64,000 bases of DNA from Macrostomum hystrix (lineage: Eukaryota > Animalia > Platyhelminthes), in NCBI GenBank assembly GCA_950097015.1, contig CATNEN010000002.1, positions 6,014,001 to 6,078,000 on the forward strand, given 5' to 3'. The notes under the pieces are model-generated. The model did no database searches. It was not told where the DNA came from and saw nothing but the letters and a program-made list of their open reading frames with translations. Positions 48,834 through 62,200 of this stretch are shown one piece after another (positions within the stretch are counted from its first letter, which is position 1; every line of letters starts with the position of its first letter). Made by a program: the position numbers and the translations under genes.

Positions 48834-49271
48834 AAGTTTATATTTTGGTACCATGAAAAAAACAGCACAAATCCAAGTTGTTTTTCCAGACATTGGCTAC
48901 TCAGCGATTCATAGAAATTTAACCCTTAGGCACAACTCCAGGGCTCCGATGGGTTTGAGGCTAACGTGATACACACTACCCATCCCCACCCAAAAAGGAA
49001 CGGTAGTAATTCTACTTTTAGTAGGCTGCTGTCCAGCAGCTTCAGTGAAATTCGAAGCATTCGTTCGTGATACTATTGGAGTAAGTCAAAAGTATAAATA
49101 ACCTACAAACAATAGCACTTATGCATTATAAAAATAAGTTTAGATGCTATATATGCGATCGTATGTAAATTCGCGGCTTCGAAAATTTTCTATGGGCTAA
49201 GAGCAAGAAAGCGAGCTCCGACAAGATACACAAGTTTTAGTTATAAAGGGTTATAAATACCAGTTGAAACC

Positions 49272-49820
49272 ACCCCCGCATCTCTTCCCTCTGCCCCAAT
49301 GTGCGTGCGCAGCGTCCTCCCCCGGCCCTCTGCACCACACCCGCGTCTCGTCCCTCTGCCCCCTTTTTGTGCGTGCGCAGCGTCCTCCCCCAGCCCTCTG
49401 CACCACACCCGCGTCTCGTCCCTCTGCCCCCTTTTTGTGCGTGCGCAGCGTCCTCCCCCGGCCCTCTGCACCACACCCGCGTCTCGTCCCTCTGCCCCCT
49501 TTTTGTGCGTGCGCAGCGTCCTCCCCCCGCCCCTCTGCGCCACACCCGCGTCTCGTCCCTCTGACCCCTTTTTGTGCGTGCGCAGCGTCCTCCCCCGCCC
49601 CTCTGCCCCACACCCGCGTCTCGTCCCTCTGCCCCCTTTTTGTGCGTGCGCAGCGTCCTCCCCCCGCCCCTCTGCGCCACACCCGCGTCTCGTCCCTCTG
49701 ACCCCTTTTTGTGCGTGCGCAGCGTCCTCCCCCGCCCCTCTGCGCCACACCCGCGTCTCGTCCCTCTGACCCCTTTTTACTGCGTGCGCTGCGTCCTCCC
49801 CCACCCCTCTGCGCCACTCC
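49272..49820. repeat. 68-bp GC-rich minisatellite (CACACCCGCGTCTCGTCCCTCTGCCCCCTTTTTGTGCGTGCGCAGCGTCCTCCCCC..), ~8 copies
   Basis: Period confirmed at 49336/49404/49472. Same family as the 56306 and 58062 arrays. Confidence 0.95.
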
Positions 49821-50689
49821 CTCCCTCCCCTATAACAGTTAGAAATCTGAAAGCAGCACAACAGAGCTCCAGGTCAAACTTGGGTAAACTTGGCAACAGT
49901 CGAGAGGGCAAGCACCGGAAAGCAGCCGGAAAAAAACAGAGAGGTCAGAGGAAGATATGCCTAGGGGCCACCCATTAATTACAGCGCAAACTTGGCCTGC
50001 ACCGACAGCAACATCGGAACCGGCACGAACCGGCCCGCTGGGGAGACCGACAGGAGGAGAATCGATCGGGGGTGGACATCGAACCCTAGGACCTCGAGAT
50101 AAACAAAGCCGGCCTGGACCACACCTGGAGACGAGGACTGGAAAAGGCCTGGACCGCACATGATGACCCGATCAAGGAGAGCGAGAGGGGTTGGTGTGCC
50201 TACCAACTAAATAGTTTGGCGCTGTGCTAGGCTTGGGGCTGCGACCCCAATCTTCTCAAACCATCTTACGTAACGTTGCCAATAATTTTACACCACCCCG
50301 GAAAGGAGGGGTTTGAAATGAAAATATAAGGCAGAGCGGGGCGCGAAAGCTCCGACACCGTCGCGATTCTCAGAGAGCTAGTCTTTGAGCTCCATTAGGT
50401 TAGCCAATTAGAAAATACACTAGCACACTAAGCCCCCCTTATAGGGCACTGCTGTTCAGACAAGAATATTGTGTAATGTATAAGGACAAAACACGCTTGA
50501 AAGCAAACAAAACAAGAACTCATTTCGTCAGTATTAATTTCTCTGATTGCGAATATTGATTGCGAGCTCGAATAACTTCTGAGACATCCTTGGGTCTCTA
50601 CACCCAAGAGGCCCATTAGGGCAGAATTACACAAGTAACCTACGTTTGATACAACTCAGCTACTAAGGTACATGTGAATACTATCCCAA

Positions 50690-52517: not shown

Positions 52518-53331
52518 TTAGGAATATTGGAATCCAAAAACCTCTAATTCGCAAATAGTCACAGGAATGTTGGACTGTCGATTGAGAATCTTAATCTTGC
52601 TTCCGTAGCCGTAGCAGGTCAGGTTGACGACGCTGAATGTGGCGAAGGTGTTGTTGTATTGGTTGCACTGAGCTCCGTCCAGAAGCAGGACGAAGTCTCC
52701 AAGTCTCCAAGGGCAGCAGTCGTTTCTGTTGTAGATGGTGACGTAGGAGATGACCGCAGCGGCAGACAGATGGCCCTCCCACCATTCGTTGTTTAGGGTA
52801 GTGTCGTCAGTGTGGCTGCAGGAACCACTGTAGAAATTTAGGTCTCTGTTTCCGTCCATCGCCTTTTCGCAAGGGCTTCCATGAGCGATGGAACTCTGGG
52901 CACAGCTGGCAAACGGAAGCTTCTGATTCGCTGTGGGAGAGTGACGTGACATGAGTGCGTCAAAAGTTCGATTTGAAAACTCACATCAATTTCTACCTTG
53001 AGATCTAAATTAACAATTCAATTCATTCACCTTTAGGTGGTCGGATGAAGATGGTGCACATCGCAGTCCTGCTTGTCCAGTTGCTTGAGTAGAAGGCCTG
53101 AGCACTGATCAGGTGGCAGTGGCTCAGCAGCGAGAAGAATCCGTAGCAGGTCGAGTTGAAGCCGCACAGATAAGCACAGAGCCGCTCAGAGCTGGCGCCC
53201 ATCGATTCCTGAGTGACCGACGGAGCTTGGAAGCTGGCGTTCCGGCCGATGATGAAGCCATTGTTGATTGAGGCGACACCTCTGAGGACACTCAGAACTG
53301 TTACAACTTGCGAGAAGAGTAGCGGCAACAT
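52518..53331 (-). CDS. Secreted PAN/apple + F-type (fucolectin) lectin, copy A, 237 aa
   Basis: Exons 53331-53031 and 52930-52518 (phase 1, 100-bp intron). Signal MLPLLFSQVVTVLSVLRGVAS. PAN CAYLCGFNSTCYGF..CHL. FTLD Ca motif AMDGN and fucose motif H-x28-RNDCCPWR. Confidence 0.9.
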
Positions 53332-53904
53332 TGTAGCATATCTCTGAGCAAAAAAGTTTTCCCGCTTAGGAGGGAAATAATTTGAGGCCGATATAATGAA
53401 GCTGAGCAAATATATTGGGATAGGCAGTAGGCATCTGACAATGACAGGCCTTCAAAAAACTCATTCTAAGTAAGACCTAGTGGGCTGTGTTGGAGACCAT
53501 GACAAAAACAAATTGTTATTTTTCATATAATCTTTTACGACTTTATGTGCAGTGTTTTACTGGGACCCGACCAGTAATTTTTTTAAACTAATTTGCTTTT
53601 AGAAAATAAAAAAACGATGAAGCATTTTTACTCTCGTCATTCATTTGGTCTGTATATCTGTCGCTGCTTCATCATCTCTTTAAGTCTGTCTGCTTCTATT
53701 AATTTGTAAATCCCAATGCATGAGGCAAATATTTCCAGCTCAGGACTTTGGCGGCTAAAAACTGCTTTATGGAAAATTTCAGGTTCCATTTGGAGTAGCC
53801 GAGACAACAGAACCCCCCCTGAGTATTGAAAACAAAAAATATGATAGCCGAAGATCTAACAGAACTATAATACAAAAGGGTGGACAAAGTAGCAGAGTTT
53901 TGCT

Positions 53905-54984: not shown

Positions 54985-56044
54985 TTATTCGTCTATTTAA
55001 CTAAATCGCATAAGTAACCATAGATAACCTTTATTCGTCTATTTAACTAAATCGCATAAGCAACCATAAATAACCTTTATTCGTCTATTTAACTAAATCG
55101 CATAAGCAACCATAAATAACCATTATTCGTCTATTTAACTAAATCGCATAAGCAACCATAAATAACCATTATTCGTCTATTTAACTAAATCGCATAAGCA
55201 ACCATAAATAACCTTTATTCGTCTATTTAACTAAATCGCATAAGCAACCATAAATAACCATTATTCGTCTATTTAACTAAATCGCATAAGCAACCATAAA
55301 TAACCTTTATTCGTCTATTTAACTAAATCGCATAAGCAACCATAAATAACCATTATTCGTCTATTTAACTAAATCGCATAAGCAACCATAAATAACCATT
55401 ATTCGTCTATTTAACTAAATCGCATAAGCAACCATAAATAACCTTTATTCGTCTATTTAACTAAATCGCATAAGCAACCATAAATAACCTTTATTCGTCT
55501 ATTTAACTAACTCGCATAAGTAACCATAAATAACCTTTATTCGTCTATTTAACTAAATCGCATAAGTAACCATAGATAACCTTTATTCGTCTATTTAACT
55601 AAATCGCATAAGCAACCATAAATAACCTTTATTCGTCTATTTAACTAAATCGCATAAGCAACCATAAATAACCTTTATTCGTCTATTTAACTAACTCGCA
55701 TAAGTAACCATAAATAACCTTTATTCGTCTATTTAACTAAATCGCATAAGTAACCATAGATAACCTTTATTCGTCTATTTAACTAAATCGCATAAGCAAC
55801 CATAAATAACCTTTATTCGTCTATTTAACTAAATCGCATAAGCAACCATAAATAACCTTTATTCGTCTATTTAACTAAATCGCATAAGCAACCATAAATA
55901 ACCTTTATTCGTCTATTTAACTAAATCGCATAAGCAACCATAAATAACCTTTATTCGTCTATTTAACTAACTCGCATAAGCAACCATAAATAACCATTAT
56001 TCGTCTATTTAACTAAATCGCATAAGCAACCATAAATAACCTTT
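54985..56044. repeat. 46-bp AT-rich minisatellite TTATTCGTCTATTTAACTAAATCGCATAAGCAACCATAAATAACCT, ~23 copies
   Basis: Period confirmed at 55031/55077. Confidence 0.97.
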
Positions 56045-56305
56045 ACACACAGCCGAAATTTAACAAGGTCGAAATTGTCAAAGTTGTCAAAGCTGTTTTG
56101 TTTTGCGGGCAAGCCTAAAGGCGCACACAGTTAAAAAGCCGACAAACAATAGCACTCCTGCATTGTAAAAATGCAGTTTTAGAAGCTATATTTGCGACCG
56201 TAGGTAGATTCGAGGCTTCGAAACTTTTCTATGGGCTAAGAGCAAGAAAGCGAGCTCCGACAAGATACTCACTTTTTTGTGAAAAGGGTTAATGACCGGT
56301 TCGCG

Positions 56306-56600
56306 ACACCCCACGTCTCGTCCCTCTGCCCCCTTTGTGCATGCGCTGCTTCCTCCCCCGCCACTCTGCGCCACCCCCACTTCTCGTCCCTCTGCCCCCT
56401 TTGTGCATGCGCTGCTTCCTCCCCCGCCACTCTGCGCCACCCCCACTTCTCGTCCCTCTGCCCCCTTTGTGCATACGCTGCTTCCTCCCCCGCCACTCTG
56501 CGCCAACCCCACTTCTCGTCCCTCTGCCCCCTTTGTGCATACGCTGCTTCCTCCCCCGCCACTCTGCGCCACCCCCGCGTCTCGTCCCTCTGTCCCCTTT
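56306..56600. repeat. 66-bp GC-rich minisatellite, ~4.5 copies (family of the 49272 array)
   Basis: Period 56381/56447. Its left flank 56140-56290 is homologous to 49100-49250. Confidence 0.93.
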
Positions 56601-56609
56601 CGCGTGTTG

Positions 56610-57170
56610 GGCAGTCACCGTCTGCTGTATGTGGGGCATGTTCCACAAATCTAGCTTACTGCCAGCCACGGGAAAAGGTCCGGCACGTGTGCGCTGCGCC
56701 GACATTGTTCGACATCCGCGAGGCCTGATCTTGCGCCTGGAGCTAGCGAAAACTCTCCAGGTTAAAGAGCGTGTGCGCCAGGTGCTTCTACAGAGGCTAG
56801 CGAGGCGGCCGCCATGTGTCCAGTGTTGGCAATCGAGAAGCACGCTAGATTCAACACCCTGAAATCAGCCGAGGCAATCCCATTTGCCTACGGCGATGCT
56901 GGTGGCAATCAGCGGCTGCTGACCGGCAGGCTGCTCGATCGATTTCTATCTGACAAGTTAGACGTGGCGGCTTCTCAGCCGCAAGCGTGAGCACTACTCA
57001 GCACACAGCCTTCGCCGAGGCGGTGCGACCTGGGCCTCAGTGTTAGGCGTGCCCGTGCCCGACATCATGCGGATCGGTGACTGGAAGAGCGATGCGGTGC
57101 AGCGGTACTTCCCGCAGTTTCAGCAGGGCATGGCGGCATCCCTCGTGTTTGCAGATGGTGTAGGGACTCT
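56610..57170 (+). mobile_element. DIRS/Ngaro-type tyrosine recombinase, 5'-truncated and frameshifted
   Basis: Motifs FHKSSLLP, CADI..LILRLELAKTLQVKER, CPVLAIEKH, HYSAHSLRRGGATWA (H at 57004) and GDWKSDAVQRY (Y at 57106), spread over three frames. Confidence 0.85.
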
Positions 57171-57430
57171 AGTTTTAGTTCCACATTCTGTCTCGTTGTG
57201 ACTCTTTGTCGCTTACCCTCCCTTTTTGTTGTATTTGTCGCTTCCTCTTCGCTGCTTTGGCTTTGGAGGTTTCGCTGCTGCTTTCGCAAAGTTTGTGCCT
57301 CGCTCACGCTTCTTTGTTCGTGCTTTCGGGGCACTAATATTTCTTAGTCAATAGAAATGAACGACTTAACGGCTTAAACAACTCAAGCCAAATGAGGAGC
57401 GACTCATCGTTCGCATCCAAAAACAATGGT

Positions 57431-57720
57431 CTAAGGAAAGCTGAAGCCATAGACCTCAAACTCGCAGCCTGCTTCCGTGGCCAGCGAAGGTCAGGTTGAT
57501 CACGCTGAATTTGCCGGTGTTGTATTTGTTGCACTGAAGTCCATTCAGCTGCAGGATGAAGTTTCCCAGTCTCTCCGGGCGGCTGTCTTGCCTGTTGTAG
57601 ATGGTGACGTAGGAGATGACTGCGTCCGCGGACAGTTGGCCCTCCCACCACGTGTTGGCCTGGCTGTCCGTGAGGCTCAATGCTGATCGTTTTGATGCAT
57701 TTTGTGTTACCGTATGTGGA
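57431..57720 (-). pseudogene. F-type lectin copy B, doubly deleted derivative of a copy-D-like gene
   Basis: Retains WWEGQLSADAVISYVTIYNRQDSRPERLGNF. Lacks 38 bp relative to D (frameshift). Its 5' part is joined to D-intron-like sequence. Confidence 0.85.
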
Positions 57721-57829
57721 CTAATCATTTTTGAGTCCTTCTAAATACAACACTTCCACTGACAGTGAACCATTACAACAGGATGGAACGGGACTTTAGT
57801 TAAAAATAATAGAAAGTTTGCTTAGAAAC

Positions 57830-58560
57830 AAATGATTACCGACTTTTAGTTTAGCTGCAGGATAAAGACACTAGATAAGTAGTAAATTAAAGTACGTGTA
57901 GTGGTTAGAGAATAACTGCCTACATTATCATCACTTCGTCAGCAATACGAAGTAGTCAGTGAAAACTGTAAAGTTTACTGTAAAAGGAGAAAGTGTTCCG
58001 AAATTTGACACAAAAGACTTCAGTTTGATTTTATTATAACTTTCACGACGGCTTCCGTCTCTCCGCCACTCTGCGCCACCCCCGCGTCTCGTCCCTCTGC
58101 CCCCTTTGTGCGCGTGCTGCGTCCTCCCCGCCCCACTGCGCCACCCCCGCGTCTCGTCCCTCTGCCCCCTTTGTGTGCGCGCTGCGTCCTCCCCGCCCCA
58201 CTGCGTAACCCCCGCGTCTCGTCCCTCTGCCCCCTTTGTGTGCGCGCTGCGTCCTCCCCGCCCCACTGCGTAACCCCCGCGTCTCGTCCCTCTGCCCCCT
58301 TTGTGCGCGTGCTGCGTCCTCCGCGCCCCACTGCGCCACAACCGCGCTAACCTGCGAGAAGAGCAGCGGCAACATCTCTGTTGAATATATCTGAGCAAAA
58401 AAGTTGTCCCGCTTTTAAGGAAGGAAAGGAAATAATTTGAGTCCAATGGAATGAAGCTGAGCTGATATATTGAGATGGGCAGTAGGAAGCAGACAGGCCT
58501 ATTCATTCTATGCAGAACTAGTGGGCTGTGTTGGAGGCTGTGACAAAAACGTTTTTTCCT
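57830..58560 (-). pseudogene. Gutted PAN-F-lectin paralog (copy E): upstream region, start codon and 3' flank retained, coding body replaced by a minisatellite
   Basis: 58350-58560 is homologous to the 5' ends of copies A (53310-53510) and C. ATG 58375 gives MLPLLFSQV. 57830-58060 is homologous to the 3' flank of C (58930-59135). Confidence 0.85.
58062..58345. repeat. 65-bp GC-rich minisatellite, ~4.3 copies (family of the 49272 array)
   Basis: Period confirmed at 58091/58156/58221/58286. Confidence 0.93.
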
Positions 58561-59143
58561 TTCAAGTCTCACAGCAGAGGACAAAAGCCTTTTTTAATGG
58601 TGCAGGAAAATACAGAGGTAACAGGAAAGCTAGCAAACTACTCGTACATAGAAAACTTTCTTTCGCATAACTTTTTCCTACCGATTATGCATTACCAAGA
58701 TGATTCATTTCGATCCATCCAAAGTTCATTTTTAACCTTTCAATTGCTACCATTGCCGTATTTGCAAAAAATCTAAAAATTTTTAAGCGTGCGCAAAAAA
58801 AATTTGTTAGAGGGGATTTCCCCTTTAGGTAGTTCGACTGTTGAAGCCGGCTTTATGTTTTCCTTTCGAAAAAATGTTACTGTATTTTTCTTTATTTAAA
58901 AAATTTCATAAAGTTCGCTCGAAAAAATTAGATTACCGATTTTTTGTTTTGCTGCAGGATAAAAACACAAAATGTATAGTAAATTAAAGTACGTGTACAT
59001 TGGTTAGAGAAAAACTGTGCAGAAATCATCACTTCGTTAACAATAGTTAGTGGAACTGTAAATTTGACTGTAAAAGAAGAAACTGCTCCAAAATTTGACA
59101 CAAAAACTTCACTTTCACGACGACTTCCCTGTCGAAGCCGCAA

Positions 59144-59944
59144 TCAAGGAAATGAATATCCGTAAGCCTCCACCTCACACAATACAAATGAACTAGTTGT
59201 CAGTCGGCTGAAGACTTTAATCCTGCTCCCAAAGCCAGTGCAGGTGAAGTTTCCGACAAGAAATGTAGAAACGGTGTTGTTGTACTCATTGCATCGTAAT
59301 TCGTCCAGCAGCAGAACAAAGTCACCAAGTTTCCAAGGGCAGCAGTCGTTTCTGTTGTAGAGGGTGACGTAGGAGATGACCGCAGCGGCAGAGAGCTGGC
59401 CCTCCCACCATTCGTTGTTTAGGGTGTTGTACGTGTGGCTGCAGGAGCCATGATTGAAAATTTGGTCTTTGTTTCCGTCCATCGCTTTTTGGCAAGGGCC
59501 TTCATTAGAGATGGAACTCTGGGCACAGCTGGCAAACGGAAGCTTCTGATTCGCTGTGGGAGAGTGACGTGACATGAGTGCGTATTTGATTAAAAAACTC
59601 ACATTAATTTCTACGTTGGGATCTAAACTAGTAATTCATTCACCATTAGGTGGTCGGATGTAGATGGTGCACATCGCAGTCCTGCTGGTCCAGTTGCTTG
59701 AGTAGAAGGCCTGAGCACTGATCATATGGCAGTGGCTTAGCAGCCAGAAGAATCCGTAGCAGGTCGAGTTGAAGCCGCACAGATAAGCACAGAGCCGCTC
59801 AGAGCTGGCGCCCATCGATTCCTGAGTCACCGACGGAGCTTGGAAGCTGGCGTTCCGGCCGATGATGAAGCCATTGTTGGTTGATGCGGCACCTCTGAGG
59901 ACACTCAGAACCGTTACAACTTGCGAGAAGAGTAGCGGCAACAT
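59144..59944 (-). CDS. Secreted PAN/apple + F-type lectin, copy C, 236 aa
   Basis: Exons 59944-59644 and 59553-59144 (phase 1). Exon 1 is nearly identical to copy A. FTLD AMDGN and H-x27-RNDCCPWK. Confidence 0.9.
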
Positions 59945-60884
59945 TGTAGCATATCTCTGAGCAAAAAAGTTTTCCCGCTTAGGAGGGCAATAATTTGAGT
60001 CCAAGCTGAGCAGATATATTGAGATGGGTAGTAGGAAGCAGACAATGGCAGGCCTAAAAAACTCATTCTATGTTGACCTAGTTGGCAGTTTTGGCAAAAA
60101 TGTCAAAACGTTATTTTCCTTACAACTGGGCGCATTTTGCGGTTTTAATTGGAAGTGAAGGATAACTATGAAATAATTTAGGCTCTTTCTCTCCTCATTG
60201 AGGTGCATCTATTATGACAATGAGCTTAATTGAAAAATTCCCGCTAGGTGGGTAGCTGCATGAGATAATTTCGTAACGACAAGAGATCTATTAGAGCTTG
60301 TCACTTGGACCGAAGCTTTATATTAAACGTCAACTATGCTATCATCGCCTCGGTCTAAAGGCGATTCGGCTTGCACTGCTGCTCACAATTGTTTCAGACC
60401 GACAAAAGTGCAAAAATGTTTGCACTGGTATGCTGAATAAATGCTGGCTGTGTTTCGCACATTTTCCTTATTTACCAGAGAAATTGATCTGCAGAAACTT
60501 CACTTGAAGCCTGCATCGGTTGAACCCTGTCAAACGCTAATTGTTATGCACTGTGTGTTGATCAGGTTAACAGTCTGATTTAGAATAGCTATTTGAAAAA
60601 GAGTAATAGTCGCAGGAGGGCTGCGGGCAATGGCACATTATTTGGTGACACTAGAACCGCAGCCAGCGAGGAGGCTATTCTGCCCATTTCGCTGACACTT
60701 GAGCACACAGTCCCATAAGTGTGTACATCTGCCCTGAATTTCTCATCATCATGCAGTGTACAGTCTCACCGTGCCTTGGAGATTGGCCCTCCAGTATATG
60801 AATTGCAAGACAAGCCCCCAAGCCTTGTCTCCGCGGCTACGCGCCAAATGAATGTGACTCATCGTTCGCAACCGAAACAATGGT

Positions 60885-62200
60885 CTAAGGAAAGCTGAAG
60901 CCATAGACCTCGAACACGCAGATCTGAAGCGAGTCAACGAGTCGACGAAAAACCCGCAGCCTGCTTCCGTAGCCGTGGCAAGTCAGGTTGATCACGCTGA
61001 ATTCGCCGGTGTTGTGTTGGTTGCACTGAGCTCCGTCCAGCTGCATGCTGAAGTTTCCCAGTCTCTCCTGGCAGCAGTCTTGCCTGCTGTAGATGGTGAC
61101 GTAGGAGATGACTGCGGCCGCGGACAGTTTGCCCTCCCACCACGGGTTGGCCTGTCTGTCCGTGTGGCTGCAGGAGCCTTTACTGAATTCTTGGTTTCGG
61201 TTTCCGTCGATTGCTCTCGCGCAAACATGATCAGAAAACGTCGAGCTCTGCTTGCAGCTGGCGATAGAGAGTCTGTGAGGAACTGCAAAAATAAATTAGC
61301 GATGGGTCAAGAGCCGTTTGACGCATACTTCAAATTAAACAATTTTGAGTAGACTTTGAGTATGTTAGCCATCAATAAACCTCTTGAAAGTTTAGTTAAC
61401 TTTTTAATTTTTTAAAGAGACGTGCTGAAAGACGTCTCTTGGAACTGTTAGCGTCTGCTTGTCATTTGCCTGAAATCACGAATCACAGCATTAACAGTAG
61501 AAAGACGGGAGGGTAGAATATCATATCCACATGTTTCTTTTTTTCTGTATCTCCTAAAATATTTAACCAACCGCCATATTGCAATCAAGAAAACGGGTTG
61601 GTTTTTATCGCTCTATTCGATGAAAAAATCTGAATCACAGTATCGGCGTCGTCGAGATTTTCAACGATCCACATTGTGGACTTTGACGAAAATCGGTCAG
61701 TCGGTTCGGGAGCTATTAGGAAGTAGGCAGCGGGCAACGGGTATTTAAAGTACCCCGTGTTCTTGCAACTGCCGATTGAAAGTCTCTGAGGGACTGTTGG
61801 ATGTCGATCAATGCTGATTGTTTGGATGCATTTTGTGTTACCGTATGTTGAACAGGACGTACAAGAAATAATAATTGACGAAGTTGAAATCATACGTGTA
61901 GTATTTCACACCTGCAAGGCTTCGAATGTACACAGTGCACTGAGTTTCTGTGCTGGTCCAGTTGCTCCAGAAGTTCGCATGAACGCTGAACAGGTGGCAC
62001 TGGTTGAGCAGCCGGAAGAAGACGAAGCAAGTGACACTTGCGCGTGGTCAGCGCAGACGTCGAGCACGGCTCACCGAGCCAGGCCTGGCACTCTCGCTCC
62101 TCTGGAGCATGGAGCGTTGGCCCCCGTCTATCTCGGCGACGTCGTGCCGCAATTGACCAGCGCTGAACCAGAAGAAGATTAAGCACCTCAGCTGTTAGCT
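60885..62200 (-). pseudogene. PAN + F-type lectin copy D: intact FTLD exon (61282-60885), disrupted PAN exon (ends 61912)
   Basis: The FTLD exon reads open with AIDGN and canonical H-x26-RQDCCQER through to CVFEVYGFSFP*. Exon 1 ends TCFVFFRLLNQCHL..CTVYIRSLA|gt in phase 1, but upstream it has a TGA and at least two frameshifts. Confidence 0.75.
61585..61793 (-). other. Divergent FTLD-like exon inside the intron of copy D
   Basis: Phase-1 acceptor ccaacag|TC CCT CAG gives VPQRLSIGSCK, versus VPHRLSIASCK at the start of the D FTLD exon. Open for 69 codons to a stop at 61585. Confidence 0.55.

Follow-up and report, generated by a model that had tools for sequence, protein, structure and literature searches.

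A lectin gene relic in Macrostomum hystrix with minisatellite DNA in place of its coding body

The locus at 57794-58565 on the minus strand of the window (the whole 64-kb stretch of Macrostomum hystrix DNA analysed here), which we call copy D, is by its genomic context an unprocessed pseudogene of a C-type F-type lectin gene: it stands in tandem with intact lectin paralogues, as identified with BLAST and MAFFT, and both of its coding exons are absent. A 65-bp minisatellite occupies their place. We consider it probable that this is an old and non-functional gene in which repeat DNA from an array close by filled a single deletion, and in which the number of repeat units has drifted since. The relic is made up of the following parts.

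58376-58565, minus strand: upstream region and 5' UTR of copy D, 75-77% identical to intact 5' regions.
58349-58375, minus strand: inherited ATG and 8 more codons (MLPLLFSQV), with which the lectin signal peptide begins, placed by alignment with seven intact C-type genes.
58347-58348, minus strand: 5' junction, 2 nt (AG) assignable to neither lectin nor repeat and the same in both paralogous relics.
58063-58346, minus strand: 65-bp minisatellite, G-rich in the minus-strand reading, 4.4 units, from TRF and unit dissection.
58052-58062, minus strand: 3' junction, AGAGAC (6 ambiguous nt) and then GGAAG, base-identical in all three genomic copies.
57794-58056, minus strand: relic 3' UTR and 3' flank of the lectin gene, 78% identical to the copy C flank.

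The family from which the relic descends is well represented around it. From 52.5 to 62 kb, and on past the end of the window, small genes for secreted, sugar-binding F-type lectins stand in tandem on the minus strand. They have two exons separated by a 90-bp phase-1 intron; the first codes for a signal peptide (MLPLLFSQVVTVLSVL...) together with a Cys-rich module, the second for an F-type lectin domain. Two members of the cluster provide the context.

59144-59944, minus strand: copy C, the intact reference gene, read from its ORFs; exon 2 holds the F-type lectin domain.
57387-57728, minus strand: a second, adjacent relic, an A-type lectin exon-2 fragment without exon 1, found by tblastn with residues 63-130 of copy C exon 2.

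In copy C, exon 1 extends from 59944 to 59644, the intron from 59643 to 59554 and exon 2 from 59553 to 59144, with GT..AG boundaries in phase 1 read from the sequence; the exons were searched against Pfam and PDB separately rather than as a joined spliced product. Intact neighbours match Pfam PF22633 (E=1.5e-8 and 2.4e-9), and their second exon matches PDB entries 3cqo (FBP32; E=1.5e-22) and 1k12 (eel agglutinin; E=1.2e-11). Judged by these matches, the second exon is a true F-type lectin domain, which bears out what an initial sequence-only reading had proposed for the parent gene. The same reading had assigned exon 1 to the PAN family. This assignment drew no support from Pfam, where a search for PAN/Apple in exon 1 of copy C and of copy B returned no family even at E<=10, and the cysteine pattern of the exon is at most suggestive of a PAN-like module.

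The lectin cluster is prone to rearrangement because breakpoints in its copies on C39 and a truncated relic adjoining copy D both testify to breakage. The latter, the A-type fragment, lies directly downstream of the gutted gene, is 79% identical to 60843-61169 and has a 44-bp piece of intron (57677-57720, 93% identical to 61808-61851) fused to the middle of exon 2. On C39 there are two further copies of copy C together with the relic's upstream region, at 14591525-14592557 and 14596243-14598061; these break off inside that upstream region, at the window equivalents of 58524 (joined to 57590) and 58476 (joined to 54655). Several independent breakpoints are thus found within ~100 bp upstream of the relic's ATG.

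Aligned with seven intact C-type genes, copy D shows lectin homology from the upstream region through codon 9 (GTT, 58349); the homology picks up again at GGAAG (58056), a position 15 nt downstream of the stop codon in the intact genes. On the 5' side, 58349-58565 is homologous to the 5' regions of copy C (59918-60125) and copy B (53305-53509) at 75-77% identity by BLAST and MAFFT, and the blocks retained in the relic include the TATA-like CAATATATC and AAGCGGGA.AACTTTTTTGCTCAG. On the 3' side, 57794-58026 is homologous to the copy C flank at 58890-59115, which starts ~15 nt past the copy C stop (78% identity), and the relic's flank holds a lineage-specific insert of ~21 bp containing AATAAA. 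Taken over the 5' region, the ATG and 9 codons, and the 3' UTR and flank, the relic aligns to C-type genes at 75-79%, and this identity is the mark of its ancestry. Between the junctions it has no lectin-domain sequence, which makes it a relic of the F-type lectin family and not a coding member.

What is missing relative to copy C amounts to ~790 bp (59917 to 59129), comprising the rest of the Cys-rich exon 1, the 90-bp intron, and the F-type lectin exon with its stop. The sequence-only reading had correctly seen that the coding body is replaced and had put the loss slightly lower, at ~770 bp. It had also traced a lectin-derived 5' end as far as the first ~12 codons; the upstream region, the ATG and 9 codons are indeed inherited, and codons 10-12 belong to the junction and the repeat. 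They look lectin-like through a T found in the window copy alone, where the other two relics have a G. Of the ~21 residues of the signal peptide, 9 are left in the window relic. The 3' flank is copy-C-like from GGAAG onward, at 78% identity, just as first described, and the gap does hold the ~285 bp of 65-bp array that had been reported: TRF calls it at 58059-58346 with a period of 65, 4.4 copies, 93% matches and a score of 478. The units run head to tail in the order head unit, u1, u2, u3 and partial tail unit, and the number of 65-bp units differs across three loci, as in a minisatellite or VNTR.

A search of the whole assembly (220 Mb) found two more copies of the relic on the plus strand of contig C2, to which the window also belongs (C2:6014001-6078000), 1.1 Mb away, at C2:4934008-4934676 and C2:4939836-4940438. 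They sit in an inverted duplicate of ~12 kb of the lectin cluster, 91-97% identical to it, and this duplicate has in turn been doubled in tandem, with a period of 5.8 kb. The A-type relic was duplicated along with the gutted gene (C2:4934800-4935060 and 4940562-4940822). Homology is confined to the lectin cluster, and these are therefore paralogous blocks and not haplotigs. A three-way alignment shows both junctions to be identical base for base in the three relics; it follows that the gutting was a single event and predates the duplication of the blocks. The relics share 94.5-98.6% identity with one another outside the array, and the 5' region has been kept no better than the 3' flank, in which the window copy is 96.8-97.5% identical to its two paralogues. 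Immediately upstream of the window relic lies a piece of ~55 bp (58565-58620) that has ~20 dispersed matches at ~90% identity across many contigs and probably marks one end of a small mobile element; at the equivalent position both paralogous relics carry different sequence.

The flanks fit an origin from one C-type paralogue. They are about equally distant from all intact C-type genes (74-79% on both sides); the intact copies are nearly identical to one another at the 5' end, and the relic stands apart from them at 75-79%, a pattern that gene conversion among the intact copies would explain. This agrees with the earlier view that a single parent, rather than two paralogues joined by a deletion, supplied both flanks, each being about equally diverged (75-79%) from the intact genes. 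We found no intact D-type paralogue in the assembly, in which the best non-relic matches to either flank reach 74-79%. Nor did the assembly contain any other lectin gene gutted by the 65-bp repeat family besides those in the window block and its duplicate at 4.93 Mb; arrays of the family occur in these two blocks and, as a 50-bp variant, on C28, where nothing matches the relic's lectin-derived flanks. Unprocessed pseudogenes of tandem lectin and immune-type clusters offer the closest general parallel. Like them, the relic has recognisable flanks, has lost its coding capacity, lies beside a truncated paralogue and was duplicated along with functional neighbours. It differs in that its body has not decayed or been frameshifted but has been cleanly excised, from codon 10 to the 3' UTR, and substituted by a repeat.

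The repeat itself can be traced. The window contains two more arrays of the same family, one with a 66-bp unit (56309-56600) and one with a 68-bp unit (49269-49821), both called by TRF, and the nearer of them is a candidate template for the insert.

56309-56600, minus strand: neighbouring 66-bp array of the same family and orientation, 1.46 kb downstream of the relic, from TRF.

On the G-rich strand both arrays end in GGTCATTAACCC, which is followed by ~175 bp of common flank; the gutted gene's array is made up entirely of internal units, without either end of the element. The unit also occurs once per copy in a low-copy dispersed element of ~170 bp, present in at least 11 places at 82-92% identity (L037:417-595 and at least 10 others, on C1, C7, C28, C30, C34, C37, C38 and C39). 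The element consists of a TATA-like 5' part with a CCATATAAG box, a G-rich middle, GGTCATTAACCCC and a terminal hairpin, CGTAAGCG..CGCTTACGG. The relic's units are 91% identical to its positions 79-135, and the copy on C28 contains a 50-bp amplification. By these alignments the 65-68-bp minisatellite family is an amplified internal piece of the ~170-bp dispersed element.

In this respect the family resembles minisatellites derived from transposable elements, its 65-68-bp unit being an internal part of the element and other copies having been amplified in situ with units of 50, 66 and 68 bp. It differs from them in that the element is low-copy, without an Rfam match or an identified coding partner, and in that the relic's array is detached from the element. 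Rfam gave no match in the window arrays or in five dispersed copies of the element, and a known RNA gene was rejected as the source of the unit on that ground. Instability driven by G-quadruplexes was likewise dropped as a candidate, the canonical motif (four runs of G3+ with loops <=7) being absent from the gutted-gene array and from the 56-kb array.

Two further repeats border the 56-kb array. At 56601-57338 it is abutted by a dispersed repeat whose copies elsewhere (C7:13435138 and many on C39) have no array. A plus-strand ORF inside this repeat (57040-57201) ends in ...GDWKSDAVQRYF, which we take to recall the C-termini of tyrosine recombinases; Pfam is blank here, and a tyrosine-recombinase element was set aside as a matter of resemblance only. 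Beside the element end of the 56-kb array, at 54985-56045, there is a very regular AT-rich array of 23 copies of a 46-bp unit (97% matches), which is shorter or absent in the duplicate block at 4.93 Mb.

These findings suggest the following history. The ~170-bp element would already have been amplified into the array that lies 1.5 kb downstream in the same orientation when one ancient rearrangement deleted ~790 bp of the lectin gene, from codon 10 to ~15 nt past the stop, and left at least 1.4 units of the 65-68-bp G-rich repeat in their place. We infer that this happened during repair of a break or of a stalled fork, in which the template may have been switched after codon 9 into the array and then back into the 3' UTR at GGAAG; such an event would belong to the class of deletions with templated inserts, of the theta-mediated end joining or the microhomology-mediated replication type. 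The relic was then carried along in the duplication of the ~12-kb lectin block, inverted, to a site 1.1 Mb away, and the inverted copy was duplicated again in tandem. Thereafter the length of the array drifted in each copy, to 1.4, 2.4 and 4.4 units, the window copy having recently added two identical units. The last step is suggested by the identity of u1 and u2, which share private variants: because these units are the same, the gain in the window copy appears to be recent.

Templated repair had been proposed at the outset in preference to plain insertion. Plain insertion fails because 790 bp were lost and element ends are absent: the gene body is gone and not merely interrupted. As to templated repair, it stands as the most economical mechanism, short of proof, given the absence of element ends, the AGTGGCGG variant in the tail unit and the GGAAG at the 3' junction, which occurs both in the repeat unit and in the lectin 3' UTR. 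The AGTGGCGG variant is present in the 56-kb array type and absent from the 49-kb array and the dispersed element. Internal units of the gutted-gene array are in places closer to the consensus of the dispersed element than the 56-kb array is, and because the two arrays are now only 83-85% identical the 56-kb array is a possible donor and not a demonstrable one. Counting against templated repair is a 5' junction without clear microhomology, where only 2 nt are ambiguous.

When polymerase-theta-mediated end joining repairs breaks in the germ line, it is documented to leave heritable deletions whose inserts were copied from sequence close by (PMC4490562). The relic resembles the products of templated filler repair (TMEJ; FoSTeS/MMBIR) in that the lost sequence was replaced by nearby DNA in the same orientation, no transposon ends are present, and a short identity (GGAAG) is found at one junction. 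It is larger than the typical theta scar, its insert of at least 90 bp and its deletion of ~790 bp both exceeding the scars described in C. elegans (PMC4490562). It differs also in having a minisatellite for its template, with the result that the insert could grow afterwards, and the donor is not certain.

Decay in several steps would yield an identical end product. On that account the ~170-bp element, or an amplified form of it, inserted into the lectin coding sequence and two later deletions ended inside the array. The repeat is indeed derived from an element that is mobile or at least dispersed, and the cluster is rich in independent breakpoints, as the C39 copies broken at 58524 and 58476 and the truncated A-type relic attest. 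We nevertheless think this course unlikely: it needs three events against one, and every one of them must predate the duplication since both junctions are common to all three copies. Moreover, the insert borders of the relic fall within repeat units, and it has kept no element terminus, hairpin or target-site duplication; a check for a transposable-element insertion at the relic found that the TATA-like 5' part, GGTCATTAACCCC and the hairpin, element parts seen in dispersed copies and in the other two arrays of the window, are all absent.

Under the surviving ATG the array of the window copy gives rise to an open reading frame, which the sequence-only reading had picked out and the ORF listing recovers.

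58043-58375, minus strand: 110-aa Gly/Arg/Ala-rich ORF with an ATG start, from the ORF listing; read here as incidental.

Two further ORFs, of 217 and 103 aa in the other two minus frames, also span the array, and a Pfam search of the 110-aa ORF gave no match. The sense strand of the array is 52% G and 4% T, and none of its three frames contains a stop at any of the three loci; all sense frames are open because T is so scarce (~4%). The same is seen elsewhere: 12 of the 26 arrays of at least 250 bp in the window have two or more stop-free frames. The three relic arrays measure 283 bp (the window copy), 153 bp and 89 bp, or 4.4, 2.4 and 1.4 units, and since the 65-bp unit is not a multiple of 3, every gain or loss of a unit shifts the frame. 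Frame conservation across the three relics is nil. The window copy alone gives the 110-aa product; at C2:4934008-4934676 the ATG is gone and a small local duplication stands in its place, and at C2:4939836-4940438 the ATG frame gives 53 aa in a different frame with a different C-terminus. The 110-aa ORF is most likely a by-product of the base composition of the repeat, the old ATG having survived in the window copy.

It had been proposed that the locus might be a proto-gene with an inherited promoter: expressed from the promoter, ATG and partial signal peptide of the lectin gene, the repeat would yield a new Gly/Arg/Ala-rich protein for secretion. The architecture invites the thought. Ancestral sequence supplies the 5' end, where a signal peptide begins, and the 3' UTR, and a repeat codes for what lies between; in this the locus recalls the antifreeze glycoprotein (AFGP) gene of notothenioid fishes, which arose from a trypsinogen-like protease gene whose ancestral 5' secretory signal and 3' UTR it kept around a repeat-coded middle (PMC6410882); in the relic, the TATA-like and 5' UTR blocks are recognisable and an AATAAA lies ~10 nt past the stop of the ORF. 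Against this, the ORF is different in each of the three copies, the 65-bp unit shifts the frame at each change in number, the stop-free frames follow from the 4% T, and 9 of ~21 residues are all that remain of the signal peptide. The inherited promoter fares no better: the upstream region of the window copy has deletions of 7 and 8 bp and an insertion of 8 bp relative to the two paralogous relics and the intact genes, and it is the most eroded of the three. Nothing in these comparisons indicates selection on the frame or on the promoter, because the copy with the longest ORF has the most damaged upstream region and the 5' part is not the better conserved. The comparison with AFGP ends at the same point. 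There the middle is likewise a tandem repeat between an inherited 5' end and 3' untranslated sequence, but its unit is 9 nt long, stays in frame and grew from the gene's own sequence, and the product is conserved, expressed and functional; the relic has a 65-nt frame-shifting unit from a dispersed element and, as judged from the three copies, lacks the maintained frame that is the key test of an AFGP-type gene. We regard the proto-gene as very improbable.

The least credible alternative, to which we give next to no weight, is that two lectin flanks were misjoined in assembly through a collapsed repeat, a worry that the 32% tandem-repeat content of the region might encourage and that is not supported here, the array being merely 288 bp long and both junctions having been assembled independently, and identically, at three loci with differing array lengths and 2.5-5.5% flank divergence.

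The relic, with its single deletion and probable repair patch, is an ordinary kind of feature and a tidy, well-replicated example of it. Its significance would be greater only if the chimeric ORF were translated. If the surviving promoter of the lectin gene drives transcription of the relic, and if the window copy is translated, for which we see a very slim chance, the locus would count as an AFGP-style partial de novo gene of very recent origin, and the copies of 1.4, 2.4 and 4.4 units would form a natural series of a repeat-coded ORF growing from a repair patch. Its more immediate bearing is on annotation. Tandem arrays make up 32% of the 64-kb window (39 merged arrays with periods of 5-68 bp), arrays poor in T stay open over long stretches in several frames simultaneously, and because many arrays are stop-free in this way gene calls in this genome that rest on ORFs need care; the 110-aa ORF is a cautionary case for calling new genes by that route. 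On the best reading of its history, the relic shows that repeat DNA can take the place of a gene's entire coding body in a single step, and that a repair patch of this kind can later behave as a growing minisatellite, here from 89 to 283 bp across three copies.
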